A stretch of 64,000 nucleotides of DNA from Epiperipatus broadwayi (lineage: Eukaryota > Animalia > Onychophora). The notes beneath the pieces were generated by a model that saw only the letters and a program-made list of their open reading frames with translations, was not told the origin of the DNA and did not search any database. Below are positions 1-59,433 of this stretch, piece after piece. The translations under genes and the position numbers were made by a program. The stretch spans positions 17,670,001 to 17,734,000 of the forward strand of contig JAQFVV010000006.1 in NCBI GenBank assembly GCA_028023455.1. Reading direction: 5' to 3'. Each line of letters starts with the position of its first letter. Within the stretch, counting starts at the first letter, position 1.

Positions 1-2409
1 CATTATTGTTTATTTGTTATTTTGCAATGCTATCTTGTAACTTCTTTTGCAAAAAAAAAATCCAATTTATTTCAATACTGTGTCTAATTCTATCTTCCTA
101 TTCTATCATCTTTCTAATAAAAGGAATCCAATGGTCCTTAAGATGATTGTTCTAACATAAACAGTATCTACTCCTACGAAACCATGCTCAAGTTTGCTAT
201 AAAATATTTTTTTAGGATGTCTTGTATCCGTTTCAGATTCTATGGTATCACATTCAGAAAATTGAAGAATACATTGAATTGATCTTTATCATCTTGTTCT
301 TGTATTTTTACAATTTTACAGATCATCCTTAAAGAAATTTTGTAATGCCTTTATGCTACATCAATAAGGAATTAAATTTCACTTCCATAAAATAAGTTAG
401 GTAGAACAACAGCTCTATGTCCAGCTAATTTAGTTATTATTTACTATGATGAAATATTCTATTTTTTAGCTTCTTAAAAGCATCTGCAGCACTGAATCTG
501 TGCTGCATTTTATCATCTAAACCCACATTTCTATTTAAAAAGCTAATAAGAATAAGATATTTCTGCACATTATTTTTTGAATTAGCAAAAATATTCCAAT
601 TGCAAACTGTAAATCCGGAATTTGAGAAGTTAAATTTCTTATATTCATTTTTAATCAATTCATATTAAACTTTCCATAATCAAGTATATCACATCTTGAT
701 GCCTGATTCATTAGACTGCATATATATAGTTTAAAAGACTATAGTCTTAACAATCTAAAAAATATTGGAACATATACACATCTTTGACTTATATCAGTTT
801 TTATTTCAAATGTCTCAGATTTTTCACTTGTAATAACACTTTCATTCCAACATATAGAAGCTGTATAATACAAATAAACTTTAGTATTTGTATAAATCAG
901 AAACTGTTTACTATCATTTATGGATATTTATAAACAGCTCTGAAATTAATTTATTTAGCTCATTGTTTATATATATTTACATGTTTTAGTGTGTAATAAA
1001 AATGTTGATTTTTGTTATTGTTAATGTAGCTAGCTATTTTTGAATATGCGATTGTGTATATGTTTGCTGATTTTTTTTTTTAATTTATTGAACTATTGAT
1101 TTATTTATTATTAGAATTTGTTATTTGAAAGTATTCATTTTAATATAGTGAAACCTTAATTGATTCATTATTTAATTCCATTTTGTATCTGTTTTCTTCA
1201 TTGCTGTAATTAGTCCCATATAAATGTATTTTTTTTCTGCATCCATTATTTCTTAAACTTGTTTTATTACATTGATTGTTAATATATCAAATAGTTTTCT
1301 TTTTAATTTGAAACTATCTAAAAATATTATTATCTATATTTAGGTATATGCTTATTTATTGAATAATATTCTGATAATTAAATTTTTTATAAATTTTTAC
1401 CTGTGAATAATAAAAAAGAGCTTTATGGTCCAAAAAATATGTACTTGAAGTTTACTTATATTTTTGAATAATTAGTTGCAAAGTCTTTTTCAGGAATGAA
1501 ACAAGTCATTCTTATATACCTTTTATTCATTTTTCAGTGCCTGTGCTCTAATTGTCTCAAATTAGCATGTGATTTTCCACTTAATCTTGAATAGAAACAT
1601 TGTCAACATCTCAGATCAACTCAAAGCACACTCAACTCCATACTTTGTATTTCAAGCTTATTTAAAGCATTGACCAATCAGAGATTTGTACACTAAAGCT
1701 AAAACAAATTTGTTACTTTTTTCTAATAAGTAAGAATGTTACAAAAAATGCTATACTTTATCTAATCACTATAATTAATGGTAACATTGGTTTTTTAATT
1801 ATATGCATTATTGTGATGTTACAATTATGTGTATAATGTATACAGTACATTTAAAGTAGTCTCTTGGTTTAAAGGTCTGGAAAAAATAATAGAATGGAAA
1901 CCTATTAAAAAAATAGTTTATTGGTTGATGCTTCAAATATTACATACATAAGATACAACTATCCTTATATTTAAATTATAATTTAAAATGTTAGTATAAT
2001 GTGTGTGTACATATATATAAATAAGCATATATTTTCAAAAAATCTATTAATATTAATTGTAATGATTAAATAGTTACTTATTTTAATAAATCTTATCCTA
2101 TATGTCAATTTATTATTTTTTTAAAAAAGTAGTTTATTTAATTGTTTAATTTTATATATATATTTTTTAAAAGTAATATTTATTTGTCTTTTAAAAGAAA
2201 GACAAAAGTTGGAGACAAAAATATGACATTTTTTTTAAAGAACAGATAGCAAAATGAGAAAGAATTTGGATAAAAATAATGTGCATTTCTATCACATTGA
2301 TTTCAGGACCAGTGAAAAGAGAGATGATGCAGAAAAATGATATCTGTATGTACACAAACATTGTGGAAAGTAAATATGAAATGTAAAGTGTTTTTTTTTT
2401 AAAAATTTA

Positions 2410-6720: not shown

Positions 6721-7434
6721 TGGATACTTATATATATATACACACACATAAGGTTTATCTAGAGTAAGAATTCATGTTCGATAATAACAGATTGTAATTG
6801 ACCTTAAGTGAGGAGAAAGAAGGTTGTTTGTATAGGGATTTAAATGTTGATCGAATCACTTCATTATATTTCTTAAAGTGTAGGATTAATAAACATAGTG
6901 CAAAGTTAATTCTGTGATTCTATGTGTATTTTTATTTATTTAACTAATTATATATTCTATCTACCAAATATCCATCTGTTAATTATTTCAATATGTTTAA
7001 AGGGGTAGTTCAAACAAGCTTTACCTAAGGTGGGTGTTCATGTACATATAAATGACTAGTTTATCATGGCATGTATGATTCCTTATAAAATAAATTATGA
7101 TCAGCTTCCTAAAGATGGGGAACAAGATTATCCTTAGTGAGTTTGGCTTCTGTCTGGCAGTGCCTATTAGTGATCATACATGTTTCATATGCTTCAACTT
7201 GTACTACTACAATTTTAATGTACCAATTAAGAATTTTAAACAAGTGAAAGTTATCAAAGTGAGACCTAAAGTATATATTTGAGCTGGGGATAATATTTAG
7301 CTTCATAAATGATTAGTAAAAAATTTTAATATGTTTCAGCAAAATGGTTTGTATCAAAGTTGTAAAGCAAAAAAAATTGAAACCTTTCACCTAACCATAG
7401 TAATTTCCTATCTATATATGTATTTAGCAATGAT

Positions 7435-7560
7435 TTGATCTGGGCCAACTGATGAGTGCTGGTTCAGCACAAAATGCCCATTTTGGGTATCAAATATCTT
7501 TTTCATATGTCCTTGATCATAAGTTTCAGTAATGTGTGTTGGAATAGAAGTTTGAAATAT
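7435..7560 (+). mobile_element. Family B hammerhead element fragment; core inactivated (G12A)
   Basis: ccaa CTGATGA (7449-7455) GTGCTG-GTT-CAGCAC, then AAAA instead of GAAA. Downstream sequence resembles the other family B copies. Confidence 0.75.
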
Positions 7561-9250: not shown

Positions 9251-12102
9251 TAATATTTGAAAATGTTGAAAACATGTATAACATTCATATTTAGGTATAT
9301 GTACATGTTATTTATATGCCCTGAACCAAAAATATAGTTTAAAATTTTTTTTTTATTAATTTCTCACTGTTTTTTTTAAAATCACAAATAACTGAAATCA
9401 CAGAATTGGAATTAATATAGAAAGATTTTTCGACATACATTATTAATACTAGCTATAGATAGCTTATGACTGTATGCAAATTTCATTATATTAATTTCAT
9501 GTTGTTGTTTTTTTTGTATGCCTTTTATTTTAATATTTATTTTTAGAAAAATAGTTTTTTTTTTTTATTTCATTTCATTAGTTTTTTAATATCTATTATA
9601 AATATCTTATATTTTTATTATTTTGTTTTTAATTTCATTTTGATCTTGTTTATGTAGTATATATCTAATAAAAGACTTATTTTATTACATCTATATATAT
9701 ATATGGAGTAGCAAGTTTCTACAAAATTGTAATAAAATCAAATTACAGTATAAAATGAAATTTAATACATGCTATTTTAACTGGATTATTGTTCTGTGCA
9801 GTTTGACCCGGTGTTAGAATTATAGTTTTAAGAGCTAAAGATTTCTGGATCAGAGCTCAGTCTGTCATTCCACTGCTCGAATGTCACGTACACACCAGCA
9901 ACCAATCATTGGATTATTATTAGAGTTATTTAATATTTTATATGCTGTAAGAATGTTAAATGGTGGTACTGCATATCCCCATTCCTAGATTAGTTATTGG
10001 CCATCTTCAGAGAAGAGCAGGATTCATATTTGCAGCAATTATTTTATCACTTTTTTTTTTATAACAGTTTAATTATACAAACAAGTTGGTTCAAATTTTA
10101 TCTCTCAGAATATTTTTAATGAATTGATTAATAATGCAAGGAAAAAGATGATAGCTAGATGTATGAATGGATTCTGTGCGTTATTTGGGGAAACCAGTGA
10201 CTAGAAACTAGTCTGGTGTTGTAGGCTTATCGTTACCTTCTAGTGTTAACTGTCTATTCAAGATTACAATAGTTGACTCTAAAGTTGTGTAAAATGGAAT
10301 AAATTGAATAATTTTGCCCTTATTTATTGCAGATATTGACAAGAAGCCCAAACAGTCATGAGACGTTATTTTTGTACTAATGCTAGTTTTAATTTTTTGG
10401 ATAATTCTTTCTTATGTATTACTAATTTTTTAAAGAGAAATTAATTATTGTTTGAAGAAATAAAATTGGAATTGCTTCCAAAGCTTATTTATGTCTTGTG
10501 AATAAACTGTTTGGGTGTTCATATGTATACGCATTTAAAATGTTTGTTTTCTTTTTACTAGCACTAAAAGATTGCAAACATTTGAAAGTCTATTGAATCT
10601 TTTTATTTTATATTTTTGTTATTGTGAGCATTATTTCCATCTTCAAAAATATATTGAATATTGGTTCTGAAATGCTTTCTCATTGGGTAAATAGCATTAT
10701 ATGGGAATTTTTTTTTTCTCTTTTCCTATTATTGAGTGGTACATTTAGTCCACTTTATCTTAGTGAGTTTTTCCAATAATCAATTGAAGTATACCTTTCT
10801 ACAACACATGTATTAAAGGAAGAATGTACATTATTTTTTTTTCGATAATAATATTCAATTTTAAAATAAATGTTAAAAATTATATTTTTATAAAGTTTGT
10901 ATATCTATACGCACAGTGTATATATAAAAATGTATGACATTTAGATGCATTTGCGTAGATGTACGTATGTTTGAATATATATATACATAGTTTTTTGTGG
11001 TTTAGGATGGAGCAGTAGATTGGCAGACTCAAGGGCTAAAGATACACGGATCGCAGATCTGCCATGTGAGTTCAGTGCTCGAATGTTGTATGTCTACCCA
11101 GTATAAACGTTCTTATTACTATTAATTTATGCACCATATATACATACATATAGAATGATCGTTATTGTGTGAAGAAGCTCTACAGCTATATCATTGGGGG
11201 TTTTTTTCTGATGCATAGTTTTTTGGGAGGATTGGGGGGTGGAGTGGCATTTTTTAATCATGTGTAATTAAATGTATATAGTATTTGGGGTGATTAATTT
11301 GGAATAGTTTTTGTAGATCTCATCTTTATTATATTGCTATTGTTTAGTAAACTTTTTTTTTTTTTAATATACAACTTTTATTTATGGATACTTTATTGAA
11401 CTGAAACTTGTTGCAAACCAAAGTCCTCTCTCTAATTTAAACAAGTCAGAGTTGACCTAAATAAGACGATTGTTTTACTTTGTTGCAGGAAAGAATAATT
11501 TCTTTACTTTTGAATCGTAAATAATCTAAATCCTTGTTCAAAAATATTTGAACCAGGTGCTTTATGATCGTTCATATTTTTTTTAAAACAACTCAATATG
11601 TTTCAAATTTATATATAATTAAAAAATTAAGTCCAAATGAGGTCTATGGTAGCACTGTTGCAATAATGCCAAATTAGAAAGCAAACTATTGCCAATAAGG
11701 GAATGTAGGAACTTTTTTTTTTTTTACTCATGAATGCATATATCAGCAAACTAAAAGATTATTAATATTACTTGTTAAATGTATAGGAAATCTCTGTGTC
11801 AAGGGTTGTTTTTTTTTAAATTTCAACAAACCATCCCATCTCCTCTTGGAATAAATCAATATGCGTGCTTGTGTATTAGTCTGGGGTGAAATTTTCGTCT
11901 TCATTAAAATCGTTATGGTTATATATGATTGCTAAATATTTAATAGTATATAATTAAATATTTGAAAACCAGGCGCTCTTTACAAACCTGGAGCTTAATT
12001 GTAAATATAGGGGATTTGAACTCAGACTTTCAAACATCCACCAACTATCCACTCTATCTCATACAACTGATATACATGATCACACACATATAGAAAAGAT
12101 AA

Positions 12103-12161
12103 ATAATCACCAATAAACATATTTCATGCTAAACCAGCATTCATCAGTTGGTCCAGATTAT
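12103..12161 (-). ncRNA. Type I hammerhead ribozyme (family B), one helix III mismatch
   Basis: Minus: ATAATC-TGG-ACCAA CTGATGA ATGCTG-GTT-TAGCAT GAAA TATGTT TA TTGGT-GATTAT. Confidence 0.8.
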
Positions 12162-12445
12162 CATCTCCCACACATATATATATAATCAGTGCTCAGTTTA
12201 TATTAAGATAGCAATTCCTCACACTTTAATGGATAGGATTTAATCTACTACAACCTCCAACTTTTCAGCCAATCATATCATTGAAAATCAGCATGGGATT
12301 TGGGCTTTCCATCAACAGATTTTCAATGATATCGATGGCTGAAAAGTTGGAGGTTGTAGTAGATTGAAGCCTGTCTATTAAAGTGTGAGGATTTGCTATC
12401 TTAATATAAACTGAGCACTGATTATATATATATGTGTGGGAGATG

Positions 12446-12504
12446 ATAATCTGGACCAACTGATGAATGCTGGTTTAACATGAAATATGTATATTGGTGA
12501 TTAT
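12446..12504 (+). ncRNA. Type I hammerhead ribozyme (family B), core intact; predicted cleavage after 12493
   Basis: ATAATC-TGG-ACCAA CTGATGA(12460-66) ATGCTG-GTT-TAACAT GAAA(12482-85) TATGTA TA TTGGT-GATTAT. Helix I has a 3-nt bulge. Confidence 0.85.
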
Positions 12505-12955
12505 TTATCTTTTCTACATATGTGTGGTCATGTATATCAGTTGTATAAAATAGAGTGCATAGTTGGTGGGTGCTTGAAAGTCTGAGTTCAAATCTCCTAT
12601 ATTTAGTATATAATTAAGTAAATTTAACTTTCGAAGATAAGTTGTTGAAGAGTATTTTTATAGCTATTATACATTCTTTATTAACTTTTAGCTACACTAA
12701 CCTACTTATGCTTTAAAGATGACCATCTTTTGCCATGTAAATAAATTGACATTAATAAAGAAGGTGGAGTTGTTATTTACAACTTTATTAAAAATGATTC
12801 TTTAAATCTTTGAAAGTTAAATTTACTTTATTAAATAAAACATACTATCAAATATTTAGCAATCATAAGTAATGAAGACTAAAATTTCACCATTGATCTA
12901 GATTCTGCTGAAATTTTTAATAAATATTGATTTTACTATATATATAAATTTGTAT

Positions 12956-15955: not shown

Positions 15956-16199
15956 TTTGTATGTATATACATTTATTTTATTAATAATAATATCACTTTA
16001 AAAAAAAGTATACTTATATAGCAATAATTAAAATATAACTCAAAACAATACTGAGTAATTTAGTCTAGATAATAAAGTTTTTGAATTAAAGATATTTGAA
16101 TTAATAATAGTCTATCTCTATTACTCACTACGAAATGAATGTTTTTTTGTTTGTGTTAACATACTCTTTATTTAATCTAGATTATTTTAGACATTATTA

Positions 16200-16465
16200 A
16201 TATATAGGGTATATGAGCACAGACTTTCACACGATCCACCACTCTCTACTCTATCTCATAACACTGATACACTTGAACAAGTATATGTTGAAAAGATAAA
16301 TAATCACCAATATATGTATTTCATGCTAAACCAACAATCATCAGTTGGTCCAGATTACCACCTCTACACATATATGCTATAAGTGCTCAGAAATATATTA
16401 AGATAGCCAATCCTCATACTTTAATGGGACAGGCTTCAATCTACTCCAACTCCAACTCTTCAACT
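16200..16465 (-). mobile_element. Family B hammerhead element, single (non-palindromic) copy
   Basis: Colinear with 12002-12265. Minus HHR at ~16300-16357: ACCAA CTGATGA TTGTTG-GTT-TAGCAT GAAA TACATA TA TTGGT. Confidence 0.85.
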
Positions 16466-16717
16466 GTCCAATACCCCCCACTCTTTTAAGAATCTTAATT
16501 TAATCATTAGATAATATAAAATTTGATTATATTTAAAAATAACTATATTCATTATATAGTTATTGAAAGATATAACATTTTTATAATTCGAAATAAAATA
16601 TTGCATCACTTTTTTTTTTGTCAGAAGCCCTAGAAGCAAAAACCGTTTACTTAAAACAAAAACTATTATATATTCAATATAAAATTTTATAAAATCTGGA
16701 AAATTGGTAGAGTAAAA

Positions 16718-29685: not shown

Positions 29686-29790
29686 TTGTCAAGCATTGGT
29701 GGTCGAGAGGTCAGGACAGCTGCTTTACAAGCAGTTGTCCCGGGTTAGCGGGTTCGCTTCCCGGCTGATACTATGGCACATGAGAAAAAT
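29686..29790 (+). mobile_element. tRNA-Gly(TCC)-derived SINE
   Basis: gcattggtggtcgagagg...cagctgctttacaagcagttgtcccgggtt...ggttcgcttcccggctgata, compared with tRNA-Gly GCGTTGGTGGT...AGCTGCCTTCCAAGCAGTTGACCCGGGTTCG. Confidence 0.8.
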
Positions 29791-31128: not shown

Positions 31129-32219
31129 TTAGTTATTTTATGTTTATATTTTAATGGTAACTTTTATTTCTCCTATTTCATCGTTTGTCTTTTACCTTTT
31201 CTTTATCCAAATTATTTTTCTCATAGGAGACTCCTCAGTAACATTTTTATTTCCTCTCCACTAGAATCATAACTCTCACAAATCTAATGGCTAGTAGTTC
31301 TGGACCATAAAATACTTTATAAATATCAACTAATTCACTTTTCTCTCAAAGCTTTTCATTCAAATGGACTCTTGTCAACTCCTTACAATTTGTTTTTGAT
31401 TTTTTATTGCAATAACGATAAATGGATACCTATAATGAACCCATTCTTTAGTTTTTATACTGCTGTATGTATAGTTTACCTATTGATTTATATATGTAAT
31501 TAGAGGGATTTTAATCCAGCCTTTAAAGCTCCCTTTAGCTGAGCTTGAAAGTCTGGGTTCAAATCTCCTCTAATTACATCTAGTTTAAAGTATATATACC
31601 ATACTTGTATTTAAATATTATATATATATGTGTGTGTATATGTATTGTGATAAACAGCAACTTGTGAACATTTAACCATATCTTCCATGCCACAATATTA
31701 CAGAGAATAACTAAATAAATGAGAAAAAAAATATTTCTATTTAGTTGGATTTTTAAATAGATTATAATTATTTTATAGTAAGAGGAGTGAAATATTTAAG
31801 AAGCCAAGATTTATACAGTAGTAGCAAAAATGACACTTTCTAATTAAATTGTTAAGATAACATTATTCACTAATGAGTTTAATTCCAAATCTAACTACAT
31901 ATCTATTGCAAGTCAGTAGACTGGAAAATGTAATATGAAAGTTTATCATTTGTACCATTGTAATATTATTGGCTTGTTTTTATTTAAATGGCTTAGATAG
32001 AAAGTGATCTCTTTTTTTCACTTATTTGTAGCTATTTTCTGTAATACTGTGGAGTATGTTGATAGGGTTAGATGTATATTGAGTTTCTATTTGTTGTAGC
32101 AATTGGGTCTGCCTAAGCAAAATCACAGTAAATATGTTTAAAAGTTGAATACTGAGATTAAGTGAGAAAGCCATAATTATGTAATGATCATTATTTGGAT
32201 CAAAGCATATCCTCTAAAT

Positions 32220-51300: not shown

Positions 51301-52706
51301 TATACAGTTTTTCTTTTATTTTTCACTTCTCATATATGGCTTTCTTATTTTATTCATAACTATATGTAAATAAATTCAGCAAACTTTTCAGTGTTTTCAA
51401 CAGTCACCAAATTGTTCTCTTATAGAATTCAAAAAGTGTTCAGAAGAATTTTTTAATTTATTTAGTTTTGTCATTTAGTTATATTTCCAGTATTGTGTTA
51501 TCATCATCATGGTCTGTATATTGGAGATAGTTAGCTGCATGCACCTTTAAGAAACTATGTTTATATGTCAAAATTGTTTGTCAATAGGATGGGGTTCAAA
51601 GAAGAAAAATCAAAGAGGTGTTTTTTATTATCAATTCAAAAAACCATTTTTAATATATTTACCCCAAATAATGGAATTTTAACATTTTTGCAAGATTTTT
51701 TTAAGTAGCCACCATTACTTAATGACTAAAAATTAGCAATTCTATCTGCTAAACCTATGATGTAAGTCATTGAAGATATATTTAATTAAGTGCTGCTTTC
51801 TGCTGAATGTTTTTTTGTGTGTTGTGTAATTGTTGTATTTGTATGTTAAAATGGAAGAGTTTCACAGATGACATATAAATGATATATTACCCAGGTTCAT
51901 CTGTGTATGGATAATAGTACTGTCATACAACATTTTAGTTGGATAATTAATATGCTTTTAAAAAGTAACATCTTTTTTTTTATTATACAATTATAAATTG
52001 TTTTTATTTATTGCTGTGCTAAGATCCATGCATGATTGTGGCCCAGCTCTGCAACAAACTTCTTATGAACTCCCAAGTAATAAACTGTTTGTTGTTGGGT
52101 TTTTTTTAAGTTGTGTTTTCTACAAGATCTTAAAGCTTTTAAACATCACATGAAATAAAAACATCAGTGGCAAATCTATGCCTTTAGCAACGACAATTTG
52201 ATTAAGAGTATATTACATAATTTCAAAAAACTTTAAAAGGATGGTTTGTTGTAGTCGTCTGTCATTAACTATTTTGTACATCCTATATTATTTTTGTCAA
52301 GTATAGGTACTACTACTGACACACAAACACTCACAGACAAAACAAATAGAAAAAGCAATGCAAAGTAGAGAAATAAAATAAGAGAGAGAATATGAAATAG
52401 TATAAATTTCAATAAAAGACAACTTATATAAATTATATTGTTGCTTGAATTGTCAAATTGCATATGGAGTTCAAGATATTTACATAAACGAGAGGTTGAG
52501 CTTAGATATTTGCAAATGCATCGAAAATTTCAAAATCCTCACTAAAACCTTTATACATCACATGATCACCATTTCTTATGCTTGCTCATAACTGTTATTT
52601 AAACAGAAAAAACTCTCTATATGTATTGCCACTCAGTGCAAGCCAGAGTAATCAATCAATGATGCCAGAAGGCTTATGCATAAAATCCCCCATCTAGCGC
52701 CTACTC

Positions 52707-52765
52707 ATCCAATATCCCCAGACTAGTTTCTGGCTTGTGGCCTTCATCAGTGAGGAGCCTTGGAT
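52707..52765 (-). ncRNA. Type I hammerhead ribozyme (family A), best-preserved copy; predicted cleavage between 52721 and 52720
   Basis: Minus: ATCCAA-GGC-TCCTCA CTGATGA A GGC-CACAA-GCC A GAAA C-TA-GTC^ TGGGGA-TA-TTGGAT. Confidence 0.88.
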
Positions 52766-53363
52766 CTAAGAGCTCCGCACCTAGATCTTAGAATTTAATG
52801 CAACCCTCCGGCAGCCATTTTTTTCTCTACTTAACTACAAAACTATGAGTCTTAAATTGAAAACACTATAATATTTTCAATCCAAGTTCATTAGCTTATA
52901 TAGTCATATAGGTCTGAACTCAGTTTAGTACTTATACAGTTTGGTAACGTTGCTTCTTTAATAACCATAGCCACCACTATTCTATTAGGCAGTATTAGTT
53001 TTGCACCAATAAACATCACATGATCACCATTTCTTATGCATGCTCATAACATTAAAACAGGCAAAACTCTATATGTATTGCCACTCACTGCAAGCCAAAG
53101 TAATCAATGGATGCCAAAAGACTTATGCATAAAATTCCCATCTAGTGCCTACTCATCCAATACTCTCAGACTATGATGGTGGTGGCTATGGTTATTAAAG
53201 AACAAAGTCACCAGAATGTATAGGTACTGAACTGAGTTCAGACCTATATGACTATATAAGCTAATGGGCATGGATTGAAAATATTAGTGTTTTCAATTAA
53301 GATTCATAGTTTTGTAGTTAAGTAGAGATAAGGGTTGCACTAGATCCTCAGATCTGCTCTTAA

Positions 53364-53414
53364 ATCCAAGGCTCCTCACTGATGAAGGCCACAAGTCAGA
53401 AACTAGTCTGGGGA
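53364..53414 (+). ncRNA. Type I hammerhead (family A), core intact, distal helix I deleted; predicted cleavage after 53408
   Basis: TCCTCA CTGATGA(53379-85) AGGC-CACAA-GTCA GAAA(53399-402) CTAGTC TGGGGA. A ~28-nt deletion follows between tggggat microhomologies. Confidence 0.8.
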
Positions 53415-53766
53415 TTTTATGCACAAGCCTTCTGGAATCCATTGATTACTCTGGCTTGCACTGAATGGCAATATGTATAGAGAGTTTTGCCTGTTTTAAT
53501 AAGTTATGAGCAAGCATAAAAAATGGTGATCATGTGGTGTTTTTGGCTCAAAACCAATCCTGCCTAATAGGATAGTGGTGGCTATGGTTATTAAAGAACA
53601 AAAGTCATCAAAATGTATAGGTACTGAACTGAGTTCAGATTTATATGATGATATAAGTTAATGAGCTTGGTTTGAAAATATTATAGTGTTTTGTAATTAA
53701 GTAGAGATAAAAGGTGGCTGCTGGAGGGTTGCATTAGATCCTAAGATCTAGGTGAAGTGCTCTCAG

Positions 53767-53825
53767 ATCCAAGGCTCCTCACTGACGAAGACCACAAGCC
53801 AGAAACTAATCTGGGGATATTAGAT
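53767..53825 (+). ncRNA. Type I hammerhead (family A), CTGACGA core, helix II/III mismatches
   Basis: ATCCAAGGCTCCTCA CTGACGA(53782-88) AGACCACAAGCCA GAAA CTAATC TGGGGATATTAGAT. Confidence 0.7.
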
Positions 53826-53989
53826 AAGTAGGCACTAGATGGGGATGTTATGCACAAGCCTTCTGGCATCCATTGATTACTCTGGCTTGCACTGAGTGGC
53901 AGTATGTATAGAGAGTTTTGCCTGTTTTAAAACCTTTATAATATATTTTACATCATTTTGACATCCTTATATATATATATATATATATA

Positions 53990-55905
53990 ACAATATAAAA
54001 TCACATATTATGCATTTCCAAAGTTTCAACTGTTTTTTTTTTTTCACCATTATAGTCATTTTCAAGGACCTATGACAAAAAAACACATATCTCTACACAA
54101 TATTCTAAATACAAATCTCTTTCATATATTAAATATCAATACATCAAATTCACAATAATAAAACATATTAACTATACATTATTATATTACTTAATCTTCC
54201 TCCCTCTTCTCCCTTTATTATAAAACTTCCTTTTTTACATATTAAGTATAAATTTTCAAAAAAATATTAGAAACCATCTAAAACACCAATAAACAAAATA
54301 CTATTTAAATCCATTTAACCCACCCCTAATTACAAATTTATTCCTCCTTTAACTATTTTATCTAACTTCCATATCAATTATCTACAATTCCTATCTATAC
54401 TTTTAAATCTATTAAAAAACTTAATGTAAATTATTTCTCTATCCTTTAACAATTTACTTAAATACTATTTAAACATTCCATATTAATTACATTTTATTTT
54501 ATATTCCTATCTAACACCATTAATCCTATTTAAAACAGGTTTATATCTTTTTATGTAAAAATATTCTTTTACCATCCTTTCTCTATAGTTTTTAACCTTT
54601 TCCAACATTCTAATATCAAAATTTTTTTGTCCAAATTCTTCATAATGTATATATACTTTGGAATTTCTATCATTTAAATATTGTTTAAATCTAGTTTTTA
54701 ATCTATTTTTTGTTGTACCAATATATGATATATTTTTCCCTCCCTCTTACAATTCAACCATTCTATAATATAAATTTCATTCATTTTTTCCATTTCTTGA
54801 TATTCTGTTTTATTAATTAAATTCCCTAAATTAATTTTCTTCTTATATACAGGTTTAAGAATTAATCTACTTTCCCCCTTATATTTATTATTTATGTTCT
54901 TCATAATCTTTTTAATCTCAAAAAATGTACTTCTTGAAACATTATAACTACTATATATTATATTCTGTATATCTTTCTTATTATTCCTCTTTCTTATTAT
55001 TTGTGTAATATTTTTTATCGCATAATTTATCAATAACTTTAACAGGATAATCATTTTTTATACCTTCCTCCTTTATATTATTAATTTCTTTTTTAAATAA
55101 TTTTTCTTCAGAACCTAAATTTATTGCTCTATTTATCCTATTATTAATAATATTTATTTTATGTTCATAATCAATATCTGAACCCCAATTACATAACAAC
55201 CCATAAAAAGTATCTCTTCTAAACACACTTGTTTCAATATCAATCTTGCAATTCTTTAAAACCTTTTTTATTATAACATCCATATAATTTATTGCATTAT
55301 TTTTTCCCTTTTCCATTGTAAATTTAATATTATTATCAATTGAATTAATATACTTAACAAAATTTTCTAATTTTCTATAATTTCCATTGAATACTAAAAA
55401 ATAATCACCCACACATCTAAACACAAAATACAGGTTTATATTTTGTATTACAAAAATATTTATCTTCATAATCATTCATAAATATAGAAGCTAACAATCC
55501 ACTCAAACTATTTTCCATACTCAAACCTTTACATTGCTTGTAATATATATCATTAAACACAAATACCATATCTTTACAACATATATTTAATATATCATAT
55601 AATTGATGGCATTCCATTTTAATAGTTTTATTATTATGTTTAATGTACATTTCCATAATTACTTTAAATGCTTTAGATGGCTCTATTTATATACATACTA
55701 CATATATCAAGTTTAACAAAAAATATATTCTTATAATTATTTCTCTCTAAAAATAAATTCAAAACCTTAACAAAACCATTTGAATTACTAACATTATTAT
55801 CTTTTTTTTTATTTCTCCATATTTTTAAATTTTTTTATTATATAACCATTTCAATATACAGTATTTTCATAATACGAATCTACACTACAAATAATAGGTT
55901 TTAAT
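53990..55905 (-). mobile_element. Penelope-like element (RT + GIY-YIG), 5'-truncated, left arm of an inverted pair
   Basis: Minus: KPIICS, VKLDICSMY, FVFNDIYYKQCKGLSMENSLSGLLASIFM, INYMDV, GIYII...YHIG; many stops and frameshifts. Confidence 0.9.
54017..54068 (-). ncRNA. Minimal PLE-type hammerhead with U3-A8 core (TTGAAAA)
   Basis: Minus: TCC TTGAAAA T GACT...AGTT GAAA CTTT GGA. The mirror copy at 57420-57471 has TTAAAAA...GAAACGTTGGA. Confidence 0.55.
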
Positions 55906-55909
55906 GGTA

Positions 55910-57510
55910 TACCTAAGATTATAATAAAAATGGAATATCATCAATTACATGATATATTAAATATATGTTGTAAAGATGTGGTATTTGTGTTTAATGATAT
56001 ATATTATAAGCAATGTAATGGTTTGAGTAGATTGTTAGTTTCTATACTTATGAATGATTTTGAAGAAAAATATTTTTGTAATGCAAAATATAAACCTGTA
56101 TTTTGTGTTTAGATGTGTGAGTGATTATTTTTTAGTATTCAATGGAAATTATAGAAAATCAGAAAATTTTGTTAAGTATATTAATTCATTTGATTGATAA
56201 TATTAAATTTACATGGAAAGGGAATAAAAATAATGCAATAAATTATATGGATGTTATAATAAAAAAGATTATAAAGAATTGTAAGGTTGCTATTGAAACA
56301 AGTGCATTTAGAAAAAATACTTTTTGTGGGTTGTTGTATAATTCAGATATTGAGTACGAATATAAAATAAATATTAATAATATGATAAATAGAGCAATAA
56401 ATTTATGTTCTGAAAAAAAATTATTTAAAAAGAAATTAGTAATATAAAGGAGGAAGGTATAAAAAATGATTATCCTGTTAAAGTTATTGATAAATTATGT
56501 GATAAAAAAATATTACATGAATAATAAGAAAGAAGAATAATAAGAAAGATATACAGAATATAATATATAGTAGTTATAATGTTTCAAGAAGTACATTTTT
56601 TGAGATTAAAAAGATTATAAAGAACATAATAAATATAAGGGGGAAAGTAAATTAGTTCCTAAACTTGTATATAAAAAGAAATTTAATTTAGGGAATTTAA
56701 TGAATGAAACAGAATATCAAGAAATGGAAAAAATGAATGGAATTTATATTATGAAATGTTTGAATTGTAAGAGGGAGGGAAAAAATACATCATATATTGG
56801 TACAACAAAAAATAGATTAAAAACTAGATTTAAATAACATTTAAATGATAGAAATTCCAATGTATATATAGATTATAAAGAATTTGGACATAAAAATTTT
56901 GACATTAGAATGTTGGAAAAGATTAAAAACTATAGAGAAAAGGATAGTAAAAAAATATTTTTACATAAAAAATATTTAAACCTGTTTTAAATAGGATTAA
57001 TGGTGTTAAATAGGAATATATATAAAATAAAATGTAATTAATATGGAATGTTTAAATAGTATTTAAGTAAATTGTTAAAGGATGGGGAAATAATTTACAT
57101 TAGTTTTTTAAATTGATATGGAAGTTAGATAAAATAGTTAACAGAGGAATAAATTTATAATTAGGGGTGGGTTAAATGGATTTAAATAGTATTTTGTTTA
57201 TTGATGTTTTAGATTGGTTCTAATATTTTTTTGAAAATTTATACTTAGTATGTAAAAAGGAGGTTTTATAATAAAGGGAGAAGAGGGAGGAAGCTGTAAG
57301 TAAAATATAATAATGTATAGTTAATATGTTTTATCATTGTGAATTTGATGTGTTAATGTTTAATATATGAGATTTGTATTTAGAATGTTATGTAGAGATA
57401 TCTATTTTTTTGTTATAGGTCCTTAAAAATGACTATAATGATGGGGAAAAAAAAACAGGTGAAACGTTGGAAATACATAATATATGATTTTATATATATG
57501 TTCATATAGT
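55910..57510 (+). mobile_element. Penelope-like element, 5'-truncated, right arm of the inverted pair
   Basis: High-identity reverse complement of 53990-55640; NGIYIMKCLNCKREGKNTSYIGTTKNRL (GIY-YIG). Confidence 0.9.
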
Positions 57511-58484: not shown

Positions 58485-58671
58485 AAATCTGGGAAATGGT
58501 GCGCAATGCATGTTAGGATAGCGTGGGAGATTTACAATCATCAACAAAAACAACAGGCAGAACTTCACAAAGAATCGGCTGGGAAATCGGACCTTCTCAG
58601 GCCTCCTAATCACATATTTAATCTACACAGGCCTCATGAAATGGGGTTACCAACCGCACTTTTAGGACCAG
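58485..58671 (+). CDS. AUTS2: Coding exon of AUTS2-family gene with the conserved Auts2 domain motif (KSGKWCAMHVRIAWEIYNHQQKQQ...LLGPG), phase 0-1
   Basis: Poly-T + ag acceptor (58483-84), GTAAAG donor at 58672. Matches the AUTS2/FBRSL1 hallmark KPGKWCAMHVxIAWxIYxHQQK. ORF-track 58506..58820 is this exon reading into the intron. Confidence 0.95.
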
Positions 58672-58854
58672 GTAAAGTATTATTAATTTTTCTGACATTA
58701 CTTTTTTGCTTGTTTCTGGAAGTTTTAATATGCATACTCACAGAAAATATGTTTCATAATTTCTTCATAATGAGGGTTAAAAAGTCCATTTTTGATGTAC
58801 AGTGGAACATTATTTTTTAAATACTAGCATGATTCATATACTTGAAGTTTAAAT

Positions 58855-59433
58855 TAATATAGGTGATTTGAATACATCCATTCTATCTTAGACAACCAAT
58901 ACACATGACCGCACACACACACATGAAAAAGATAAATGATATATGTATTTCATGTTGAACCAGTACTCATCAGTTGTACAGATCATCATCTCTCACACAC
59001 ATACATAATCAGTCCTCAGTTTATATTAAGATACTTACTGGACAGGCTTCAATCTACTCCATCCTTCAATTCTTCAGCCATCCATACCATTGAAAATATG
59101 ATGCACCCAAATTCATTGTTGATGCCAATATTATTAGTGAATTACAGTCAACATGGGCATTAATATTGGCATCATCTTCAGATTTTCATTGGTGTGGGTG
59201 GCTGAAGTGTTGGAAGATGGAATATATTGAAGTCTATCCATTAAAGTTTGAAGATTTGCTATTTTAATATAAACCAAGTCCTGATTATATATGTGTGTGG
59301 TAAATAGTGATCTGGACCAACTGATGAGTTATAGTTCAGAATGAAATATGCATAGTGGAGATCATTTATTTTTTTCATGTGTATGGTCATGTAGAAGGGA
59401 ACTTGAAAGTCTGTGTTCAAATCCCCTATATTA
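58855..59433. mobile_element. Family B hammerhead element, second head-to-head palindrome
   Basis: Same outer termini as 12002-12605 (taatataggtgatttgaa / ttcaaatcccctatatta). HHR cores at 58967-73 (minus) and 59321-27 (plus), with helix I damage. The spacer has its own IR (gatgccaatatta/taatattggcatc). Confidence 0.85.

Follow-up and report, generated by a model that had tools for sequence, protein, structure and literature searches.

Head-to-head palindromes of a non-coding repeat in Epiperipatus broadwayi as probable Penelope-style double-primed insertions

In a 64,000-nucleotide stretch of the Epiperipatus broadwayi genome (contig JAQFVV010000006.1, positions 17,670,001 to 17,734,000; referred to below, at its full length, as the window), two long palindromes of one repeat family are located at about 12 and 59 kb. 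Palindromes of this kind have the appearance of MITEs, and a previous sequence-only reading of the window had suggested that some apparent MITEs may be double-primed retro-insertions. The question raised by this locus is hence whether such palindromes are DNA transposons or the product of retrotransposition. The repeat, which we term Family B, is a non-coding sequence of about 475 nt, of which this 5.6-Gb, 27%-GC genome contains thousands of copies; candidates at first look numbered more than 3,500 for one arm and more than 4,500 for the other. It includes no ORF and is dispersed mostly as inverted pairs, in insertions of one to two units. When unit positions 322–475 were inspected by eye for an ORF remnant, the sole ATG-initiated frame was found to stop after 11 codons. 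A sequence of 43–45 nt, corresponding to unit 433–475 and hereafter termed the tail, lies beyond an end at about unit 432: the identical 45 nt are found downstream of the 3′ end in approximately half of all copies, and in tandem copies the tail reads on into the next unit. The 3′ end carries neither a poly(A) nor a microsatellite tail. Two states of the family can be distinguished, a majority state (A after CTGATGA, GGTTTA) and that of an older subfamily (G, GTTCA).

The palindrome at 12 kb is, as had been described, a long hairpin: positions 12002–12289 and 12318–12605 form an ungapped inverted repeat of 288 nt which is 93% complementary. That at 58855–59433 is likewise a palindrome of the same family, more decayed (about 80%). 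The orientation reported for the arms was also confirmed, as the 3′ end of the CTGATGA...GAAA strand points outward in both arms. Mapping to the unit led us to correct the span of both insertions (Table 1). The outer termini had been described as the same. In fact they differ, since in both palindromes the left arm continues into a tail of 39–43 nt and the right arm does not. The spacers do differ between the palindromes (28 and 76 nt), but they are not foreign DNA, as both correspond to 5′ sequence of the longer arm. The spacer at 12 kb is the first 31 nt or so of the right arm (unit 116–146), and that at 59 kb is the first part of the right arm (unit 76–139). Measured over 11959–12289, tail included, the left arm of the 12-kb insertion matches the family consensus at 94%. 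The host repeat into which this insertion falls has a diverged paralogue, the reverse complement of 12806–12872, which is uninterrupted and contains the duplicated stretch once.

Table 1. Positions of Family B copies and of a Penelope-like element (PLE) pair in the window.
Feature	Position	Strand	Unit	Remarks
12-kb insertion, corrected span	11959–12605			
Left target-site duplication copy	11944–11957	.		TAGTATATAATTAA; exact 14-nt repeat abutting both ends
Right target-site duplication copy	12604–12617	.		Exact 14-nt match to left copy
Tail of left arm, 43 nt	11959–12001	-	433–475	Maps contiguous with arm
Left arm, 5′-truncated	12002–12289	-	147–432	By alignment to Family B consensus
Right arm, tail absent	12287–12605	+	116–432	95% to consensus; overlaps left arm by 3 nt
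Hammerhead-like motif, right arm	12441–12509	+		Putative; hand-read from sequence
Hammerhead-like motif, left arm	12098–12166	-		Putative; mirror of 12441–12509
59-kb insertion, corrected span	58816–59433			
Tail of left arm, diverged	58816–58854	-		Older-subfamily consensus aligns unit 104–472 at 58816–59135
Left arm, older subfamily	58855–59135	-	104–432	About 76% to consensus
Right arm, tail absent	59136–59433	+	about 76–428	Internal deletion of about 31 nt
Single 5′-truncated copy	16198–16475	-	157–432	No tail, no partner arm
Miniature head-to-head pair	31469–31617	.	388–461 (-), 397–474 (+)	Two 3′-terminal fragments of about 75 nt
Isolated internal fragment	7413–7530	+	about 252–368	
Head-to-head pair of 5′-truncated coding PLE copies	53980–57508	.		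Inverted repeats; GIY-YIG ends outward
ORF remnants of this PLE	55916 to 54513; 55924 to 56975	-; +		

The window includes further copies of the repeat. The one-armed copy previously placed near 16200–16465 was recovered with slightly different limits, and a search for a clear target-site duplication around it gave none. The miniature pair is the sole Family B pair tailed on both arms.

We then considered 50 mapped Family B insertions out of the thousands present in the genome. Thirty-two are two-armed, a share (about 65%) that is not an unbiased estimate because loci were chosen by their likeness to a long arm. All 32 are in the -+ orientation, with sense 3′ ends pointing outward, and none is in the +- orientation (binomial p about 5e-10). 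Outer ends map to only two unit positions, about 432 or about 475, while the inner (5′) ends of the 41 arms not used for picking loci spread over unit 4–398; inner junctions thus vary against fixed outer ends, a combination for which the sequence-only reading had proposed to test. The 5′ ends show a broad enrichment at unit 101–161 and no clustering at the predicted ribozyme cut (unit 321/322). Among the 25 scorable pairs, 23 have the tail on one arm and one arm only (p about 1e-5 against an independent 50:50 choice), and the pattern holds in both window palindromes. Some arms exceed one unit (428–475 followed by 4–475; 301–475 followed by 4–435), the tail passing straight into the unit start. 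Single 5′-truncated copies and partial head-to-tail units end at the same 3′ positions as paired arms.

Arm-arm junctions are direct, with an overlap of 0–7 nt and no target sequence between the arms, and a target-site duplication encloses the whole pair. An exact repeat of at least 10 nt was found in 13 of 25 pairs, versus 3% of mismatched-flank controls; among single copies it was found in 3/16, clean ones being thus rare. The raw duplication lengths (10–19 nt) are reduced to about 10–15 once overlap with the A/T-rich element end is removed. Duplications of variable length had been named in advance as pointing to a retro mechanism, and those obtained do so.

The two arms of a pair are also related in sequence. 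The variants formerly quoted as private to each palindrome are not: A and GGTTTA represent the majority state of the family (A in 22/40 copies), and G and GTTCA that of the older subfamily. Arms do, however, share an excess of derived variants, 31 in common versus 9.5 expected, a value reached in 0 of 100,000 resamplings. The arms at 12 kb have four derived variants in common, two of which are rare elsewhere, occurring in 2/35 and 1/39 of other copies. Pairs with arms from different subfamilies, which would have excluded a fold-back origin, were looked for; the one candidate locus (94% vs 82%) was discarded, as a 53-nt (TA)n expansion accounts for the gap.

The units had been described as ribozyme-bearing. 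A hammerhead-like motif can be recognized by hand in both arms of the 12-kb insertion, and on the basis of this hand-drawn motif Family B may be regarded as a putative hammerhead-bearing repeat. The right-arm motif comprises the helix I strands, CTGATGA (12460–12466), helix II, GAAA (12482–12485) and a short palindromic helix III, with a predicted cut after 12493 (unit 321/322). The consensus reads ATGCT/AGCAT in helix II and has ATACGTAT, a palindrome, as helix III. Of about 75 copies, 58 retain an intact core, and 65/79 retain GAAA. Between the subfamilies, helix I shows a single compensatory change, from A-U to G-C; pair 10.1-11.1 is A-U or G-U, not G-C. Drawn by hand, the motif fits the conserved hammerhead core (CUGAUGA ... 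GAAA, helices I and II and a cleavage triplet), but Rfam returned no hammerhead match, and no tRNA match either, in the whole window at the gathering threshold or in the locus and 18 other copies at E ≤ 10 or E ≤ 1. The only Rfam matches, all sub-threshold and to plant and animal microRNA models, were considered artefacts of the long hairpin. A T-loop-like GTTCAAATCC near the 3′ end is the sole tRNA-like feature, and as ARAGORN found nothing in the consensus and 27 loci, the tRNA-like look of this end is unsupported. Family B was consequently rejected as a tRNA-derived SINE, there being no tRNA-like module recognizable by ARAGORN or Rfam.

A search of the genome with PF01541 (GIY-YIG) yielded more than 10,000 candidates, many of them arranged as inverted or tandem pairs; all 150 that were scored exceed the cut-off, and their ORFs reach 901 aa. 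The window itself contains a PLE pair, matched by tblastn when ORFs from GIY-YIG loci of this genome were used as queries (E down to 3e-78), and its architecture is that of Family B pairs. Local alignment of this PLE with Family B scored no better than shuffles; its 3′ UTR shows no similarity to Family B and CTGATGA is absent from it. Neither this PLE nor any of 30 GIY-YIG loci, a small sample, corresponds to an autonomous PLE with Family B sequence. The only Family B matches within the 30 loci are neighbouring copies in convergent orientation (L057 and L063) and, at L059, a fragment of 68% identity that lies upstream of a truncated PLE. As no sequence-sharing autonomous PLE was found, we infer the driver from the insertion footprint alone.

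Taken at a probability of roughly 0.8, Family B is a non-autonomous, non-coding retroelement, a putatively hammerhead-bearing "retrozyme"/SINE-like derivative for whose insertion a PLE supplies the reverse transcriptase and the GIY-YIG endonuclease in trans. On this reading a palindrome records a single insertion event, made of two 5′-truncated retro-copies with their 3′ ends outward, and only looks like a MITE. The endonuclease would nick both strands of an AT-rich target about 10–15 bp apart, the distance suggested by the duplications. Each free 3′-OH would then serve as primer for copying Family B RNA into cDNA from one of two fixed sites inside the unit, at about 432 or 475, as the two fixed ends and the one tail per pair suggest. 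Each cDNA would extend over a variable distance, sometimes over more than one unit, in keeping with the variable inner ends and partial tandems observed; arms longer than one unit imply a multimeric or circular template. The two antisense cDNAs, lying on opposite strands, would finally join head-to-head through the 0–7 nt of overlap seen at the junctions and be filled in. The suggestion that apparent MITEs may be double-primed retro-insertions is thereby supported, and priming on both strands would match in vitro PLE work (PMC11167929). Double-primed palindromes are not a new idea: they are a known PLE footprint, the signature being an inverted 5′-truncated copy and a 30–40-bp tail at one end only (PMC8557442, PMC8969392). 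Frangieh et al. 2024 (PMC11167929) describe a PLE protein that in vitro cuts the two strands of its target and extends both, starting at two internal sites which delimit the tail. Animal retrozymes have been proposed to be non-autonomous PLE derivatives (Li et al. 2026, bioRxiv 10.64898/2026.07.22.740005).

Retroelement machinery might instead prime a single strand, the one cDNA folding back on itself, being copied and integrating as a hairpin. In vitro, both strands get extended (PMC11167929). Such snap-back would fit the inner ends, which in about half of pairs lie 10–66 nt apart (116/147, 78/103, 99/135) as expected from a small loop, yet the 5′-end enrichment at unit 101–161 can alone yield apparent symmetry, and other arms are very unequal (121/356, 286/103, or an arm of 90 nt facing one longer than a unit). 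Variants shared by both arms agree with it, and the double-priming model predicts them likewise. A fold-back copy stops at the starting point of the first cDNA and should give two arms with identical outer ends; the tail on one arm in 23/25 pairs speaks against this, and we consider snap-back unlikely. Insertion by a LINE through twin priming of the L1 type was weighed too. As Ostertag and Kazazian reportedly described in 2001, twin priming gives rise to inverted segments that lie within a single target-site duplication and show microhomology where they join, which resembles what is seen here. In that mechanism the second primer pairs with an internal stretch of the same RNA, which puts the outer end of the inverted piece at an internal position and leaves the two pieces without overlap. 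The two Family B arms, on the contrary, both finish at the 3′ terminus of the element itself and overlap by 150–350 nt, and that terminus has no poly(A) or microsatellite tail. A one-sided tail, 43–45 nt long here, has moreover been described as PLE-specific (PMC11167929, PMC8557442), and twin priming appears very improbable.

Single copies taken by themselves, with long inverted arms and a flanking duplication, would be scored by repeat finders as a true MITE or a foldback DNA transposon with terminal inverted repeats of about 300 nt. Such an origin is hard to reconcile with a duplication that is not of fixed length, with two termini that differ by the 43–45-nt tail, with unequal arms and an inner junction that is different in every copy, and with single arms and head-to-tail partial units that have the same 3′ end; the +- arrangement is missing (0 of 32 two-armed insertions), and no transposase-bearing relative turned up in a search that was not exhaustive. 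We regard it as highly improbable. Pairs could also be generated after insertion, either by inverted duplication or by chance insertion of one copy beside another. Cleavage by PLE endonucleases close to their own sequences has been reported (PMC11167929), so nested matches occur, and two loci (L015 and L057) resemble nested insertions. Against this, a single duplication flanks the whole pair, orientation is biased 32:0, arms have more variants in common than expected and their junctions are direct, with target sequence absent between them, all of which leaves rearrangement with hardly any likelihood.

Under double-primed insertion by a PLE, one aspect of the footprint deserves attention. In vitro, start-site use by the PLE protein does not differ between strands (PMC11167929), and for this reason published data do not explain the near-obligatory one-tail rule. 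The 23/25 count tentatively suggests, although we are doubtful of it, that the two primings behind an insertion form a coupled, asymmetric pair. The protomers of a dimeric PLE protein might, for instance, each take a different start site, possibly on an RNA dimer formed via the palindromic helix III. If true, coupled asymmetric priming would amount to a hitherto unstated mechanistic rule of Penelope-like retrotransposition, and one readable from abundant non-coding derivatives of the Family B type.

These results bear on annotation: in PLE-rich animal genomes, palindromes of this kind will be called MITEs, foldback elements or hairpin-RNA genes. Short non-coding palindromes with flanking duplications, which Rfam microRNA models score below threshold, are in truth retro-insertions. 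Family B footprints also provide independent, mechanism-level support for PLE mobilization of animal hammerhead "retrozymes", a proposal so far based mainly on co-distribution and pseudo-LTR similarity (10.64898/2026.07.22.740005). What the footprints add in quantitative terms is small, namely that pairs carry one tail almost without exception; the known picture of PLE movement is unchanged, and Family B cleanly exemplifies a kind already known.

Family B resembles PLEs in its 5′ truncation, its partial head-to-tail units (pseudo-LTR) and the adjoining inverted 5′-truncated copy (PMC8557442; PMC11167929), as well as in the tail at one end, the variable target duplication in AT-rich DNA and a hammerhead motif in the repeated part, putative in Family B. 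It differs from them in lacking both an ORF and any detectable sequence similarity to the PLEs that were sampled, in a tail of 43–45 rather than 30–40 nt, and in a one-tail rule which is nearly absolute (23/25) where papers say "often". Animal (non-LTR) retrozymes are said, after Cervera and de la Pena in 2020, to be small hammerhead-bearing repeats, thought to spread via circular RNA. Family B shares with them a short non-coding unit, a putative type-I-like hammerhead with a weak or palindromic helix III, a PLE-rich animal genome and arms of more than one unit that fit a multimeric or circular template, but it forms dispersed insertions, mostly inverted pairs, instead of long tandem arrays. 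The preprint 10.64898/2026.07.22.740005 makes no mention of inverted pairs, tails or duplications for non-LTR retrozymes. With L1 twin priming, Family B has in common two primings, proposed for Family B, at one staggered break, an inverted segment, inner-junction microhomology and one flanking duplication, whereas its arms both begin from the 3′ terminus of the element itself and copy the same segment, without poly(A). MITEs and foldback elements are likewise non-coding and of high copy number, with long inverted arms and a flanking duplication in about 600 bp; Family B, in contrast, has duplications of variable length, unequal arms and non-identical termini, and its single-arm and tandem forms share one and the same 3′ end.

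The Family B palindromes at 12002-12605 and 58855-59433, which the sequence-only reading had assigned to one family, are real. The first is an inverted repeat of 288 nt (12002-12289 against 12318-12605), with arms 93% complementary and 28 nt apart; the second belongs to the same family and is more decayed. Their coordinates had to be corrected, as each insertion extends about 40 nt further left than proposed. Mapping of the arms onto the repeat unit showed that the reported "different spacers" are no more than the stretch by which the longer arm extends further 5′; the single-arm copy noted near 16200-16465 was recovered.

When the 12-kb arm was used to query the assembly (5.6 Gb, G+C about 27%), more than 3,500 first-look candidates were obtained, and the 40 that were scored match it along all 288 nt at 91-94% identity. 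The 59-kb arm returned more than 4,500 candidates with identities of 79-86%, which marks that palindrome as an older copy from an older Family B subfamily. Alignment of 27 loci with their flanks showed that homology extends past both ends of the 288-nt arm, and the pile-up consensus gave a unit of about 475 nt, in which that arm corresponds to positions 134-432. Copies terminate either at unit ~432 (...CCCCTATATTTA) or at ~475, the latter carrying a tail of 43-45 nt with a CCAGG/CCTGG hairpin inside; in head-to-tail copies the next unit, from its position 1, follows directly on the tail. Copies differ in the length of the TATATATA tract (unit ~250-262), and at one further locus (L026:2100-2160) a single arm carries there a 53-nt (TA)n-rich expansion.

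Coordinates of Family B copies and associated features (window positions unless a contig of the same genome, G000, is named)
Feature	Position	Strand	Remarks
12-kb insertion, left arm	11959-12289	-	unit 147-475; tail at 11959-12001
12-kb insertion, right arm	12287-12605	+	unit 116-432; joins left arm with 3-nt overlap
59-kb insertion, left arm	58816-59135	-	unit 104-472; tail at 58816-58854
59-kb insertion, right arm	59136-59433	+	unit ~76-428; joined to left arm
Single Family B arm	16198-16475		unit 157-432
Miniature head-to-head pair	31469-31617		150 nt
Family B fragment	7413-7530
Host inverted repeat around 12-kb insertion	11885-11949 and 12842-12891; also 12600-12638 / 12806-12844
Head-to-head pair of 5′-truncated coding PLE copies	53980-57508		3.5 kb; GIY-YIG ends face outward; arms about 300 nt apart
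GIY-YIG cluster examples	C12394:20942626-20950119, C6351:2388234-2389184, C2:33557098-33558269

Both consensus sequences were then mapped onto 44 independent loci as well as the window, yielding 50 insertions. Of these, 32 are two-armed, and all 32 have their arms in -+ orientation, so that the sense 3′ ends point outward, the opposite +- arrangement being found in none. Exactly one arm bears the tail in 23 of the 25 pairs with both ends scorable (neither arm in one, both in one; binomial p about 1e-5 against independent choice). Among single-orientation insertions, the tail is absent at the end in 11 and present in 5. The 3′ ends are fixed at two positions (~432 or ~475) and the inner 5′ ends vary: in arms outside those used for locus selection they spread over unit 4 to 398. 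They are enriched at unit 101-161 (14 of 41 such arms, in 13% of the unit), and these arms show no peak at the predicted ribozyme cut. The enriched segment (e.g., window 12287-12330) adjoins a CAACAT/ATGTTG hairpin; the reverse transcriptase may pause or switch templates there. Arms can be longer than one unit, and inner junctions are mostly direct, with overlaps of 0-7 nt.

Direct repeats abut the outer ends and flank the pair as a whole. An exact repeat of at least 10 nt was found in 13 of 25 pairs, versus 3% when left and right flanks from different loci were paired. Duplication length had been put forward as a means of telling a retro mechanism from a DNA transposon; it is variable, about 10-15 bp once overlap with the A/T-rich end of the element is discounted, with one duplication around each pair. 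For the 12-kb copy the duplication is TAGTATATAATTAA (11944-11957 and 12604-12617); this insertion lies within one arm of a ~1-kb host inverted repeat, the other arm of which contains the target site once only and uninterrupted. The host structure may itself be a MITE or a further foldback retro-insertion.

The arms of a pair share 31 derived variants, compared with 9.5 for unrelated copies, and 0 of 100,000 resamplings reached the figure of 31. The claim that arms share private variants thus holds for this excess, but not for the variants originally cited, which are majority or subfamily states. Differences between arms are mostly private to one of them, the pattern that decay of initially identical arms should leave.

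The fixed outer ends, varying inner ends and variable duplications support the earlier proposal that these apparent MITEs are retro-insertions. Staggered nicks would be made on both target strands, each strand being primed on Family B RNA, possibly multimeric or circular, at either of two internal start sites; the two antisense cDNAs would then be joined via microhomology and filled in. Folding back of a single cDNA on itself is an unlikely source of the pairs, as it leaves both the one-sided tail and the very unequal arms unexplained. Twin priming of the L1 type is more improbable still, since it predicts a poly(A) tail and an inverted piece that does not overlap the other and whose outer end is an internal position. 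We give very little credence to a MITE, which should have fixed duplications and identical termini, and least of all to chance adjacency of two copies, from which both orientations and separate duplications would be expected.

A type-I hammerhead can be drawn on the Family B consensus, with helix I formed by ACCAA/TTGGT plus ATAATC/GATTAT, followed by the CTGATGA core (from unit 287), helix II (ATGCT-GGTTT-AGCAT) and GAAA. The palindrome ATACGTAT represents helix III; it is too short for self-closure but could pair between two molecules, and in the window copy it shows CpG decay. The predicted cut falls after UA, about unit 321/322. Helix I of the older subfamily has G-C in place of an A-U pair, a compensatory change (A/T in 46 copies, G/C in 21, mixed in 8) that is one event linked to the subfamily. 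Pair 10.1-11.1 is not G-C, and no hammerhead was matched by Rfam even with the threshold relaxed to E<=10. From sequence, the motif is plausible but unproven. Sub-threshold Rfam matches to microRNA precursors (window 12233-12374 and three other loci, L002, L010 and L013), involving the plant and animal models MIR477, MIR7502, MIR7533 and mir-4433, were rejected, being due only to the long perfect hairpins; such matches are likely to give rise to false miRNA calls.

Pfam Auts2 matches the first 53 residues of a 104-aa ORF at 58506-58820 (+) (E 3.6e-08). This ORF probably represents one exon of an AUTS2-like gene, and the 59-kb insertion would therefore sit in the adjoining intron. The Auts2 match and the abundance of Penelope-like elements identify the window as animal DNA, with no sign of a human contig. 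A tRNA-Val (TAC) call at 29692-29773 (+) (82 nt; Rfam 37.7 bits, ARAGORN) has an enlarged T-loop region and could represent a repeat derived from a tRNA instead of a working gene. A second hammerhead-type repeat, Family A, forms an inverted and tandem composite at 52543-53940 (unit about 400-450 nt) that directly adjoins the coding pair of Penelope-like elements (PLEs) at 53980-57508.

A search of the genome for the GIY-YIG domain returned more than 10,000 candidates, many as inverted or tandem pairs. Matches often lie in - + (+ +) clusters that repeat every ~3.1 kb and have ORFs of up to 901 aa; these are apparently PLE tandems that are intact and include an inverted leader copy. Sequence comparison detected no resemblance to Family B in 30 GIY-YIG loci or in the window PLE, and CTGATGA is absent from the ~530-nt 3′ UTR of the latter. 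Downstream of PLE GIY-YIG ends, at a distance of 200-1,200 nt, convergently oriented Family B copies occur at two loci (L057:901-1312 and L063:2940-3196); this may reflect insertion beside PLE sequence or chance.

PLE insertions are highly 5′-truncated and often partial tandems, their signature being a neighbouring inverted 5′-truncated copy and a tail of 30-40 bp at a single end (Craig et al., 2021, PMC8557442), a description also given in a curation guide (PMC8969392). A purified PLE protein, unlike R2 or L1, cleaves and extends both target strands, and reverse transcription begins at two adjacent internal sites, the interval between them being the genomic tail (Frangieh et al., 2024, PMC11167929). 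A 2026 preprint makes the case for animal retrozymes as non-autonomous derivatives of PLEs (bioRxiv 10.64898/2026.07.22.740005); inverted pairs, tails and duplications do not figure in it. Except for sequence kinship with an autonomous PLE, every PLE footprint feature that we tested was found in Family B. The phenomenon is thus the published Penelope-like footprint, here in a new non-coding family, and the strictness of the one-tail rule is the sole point that goes slightly beyond the cited literature.
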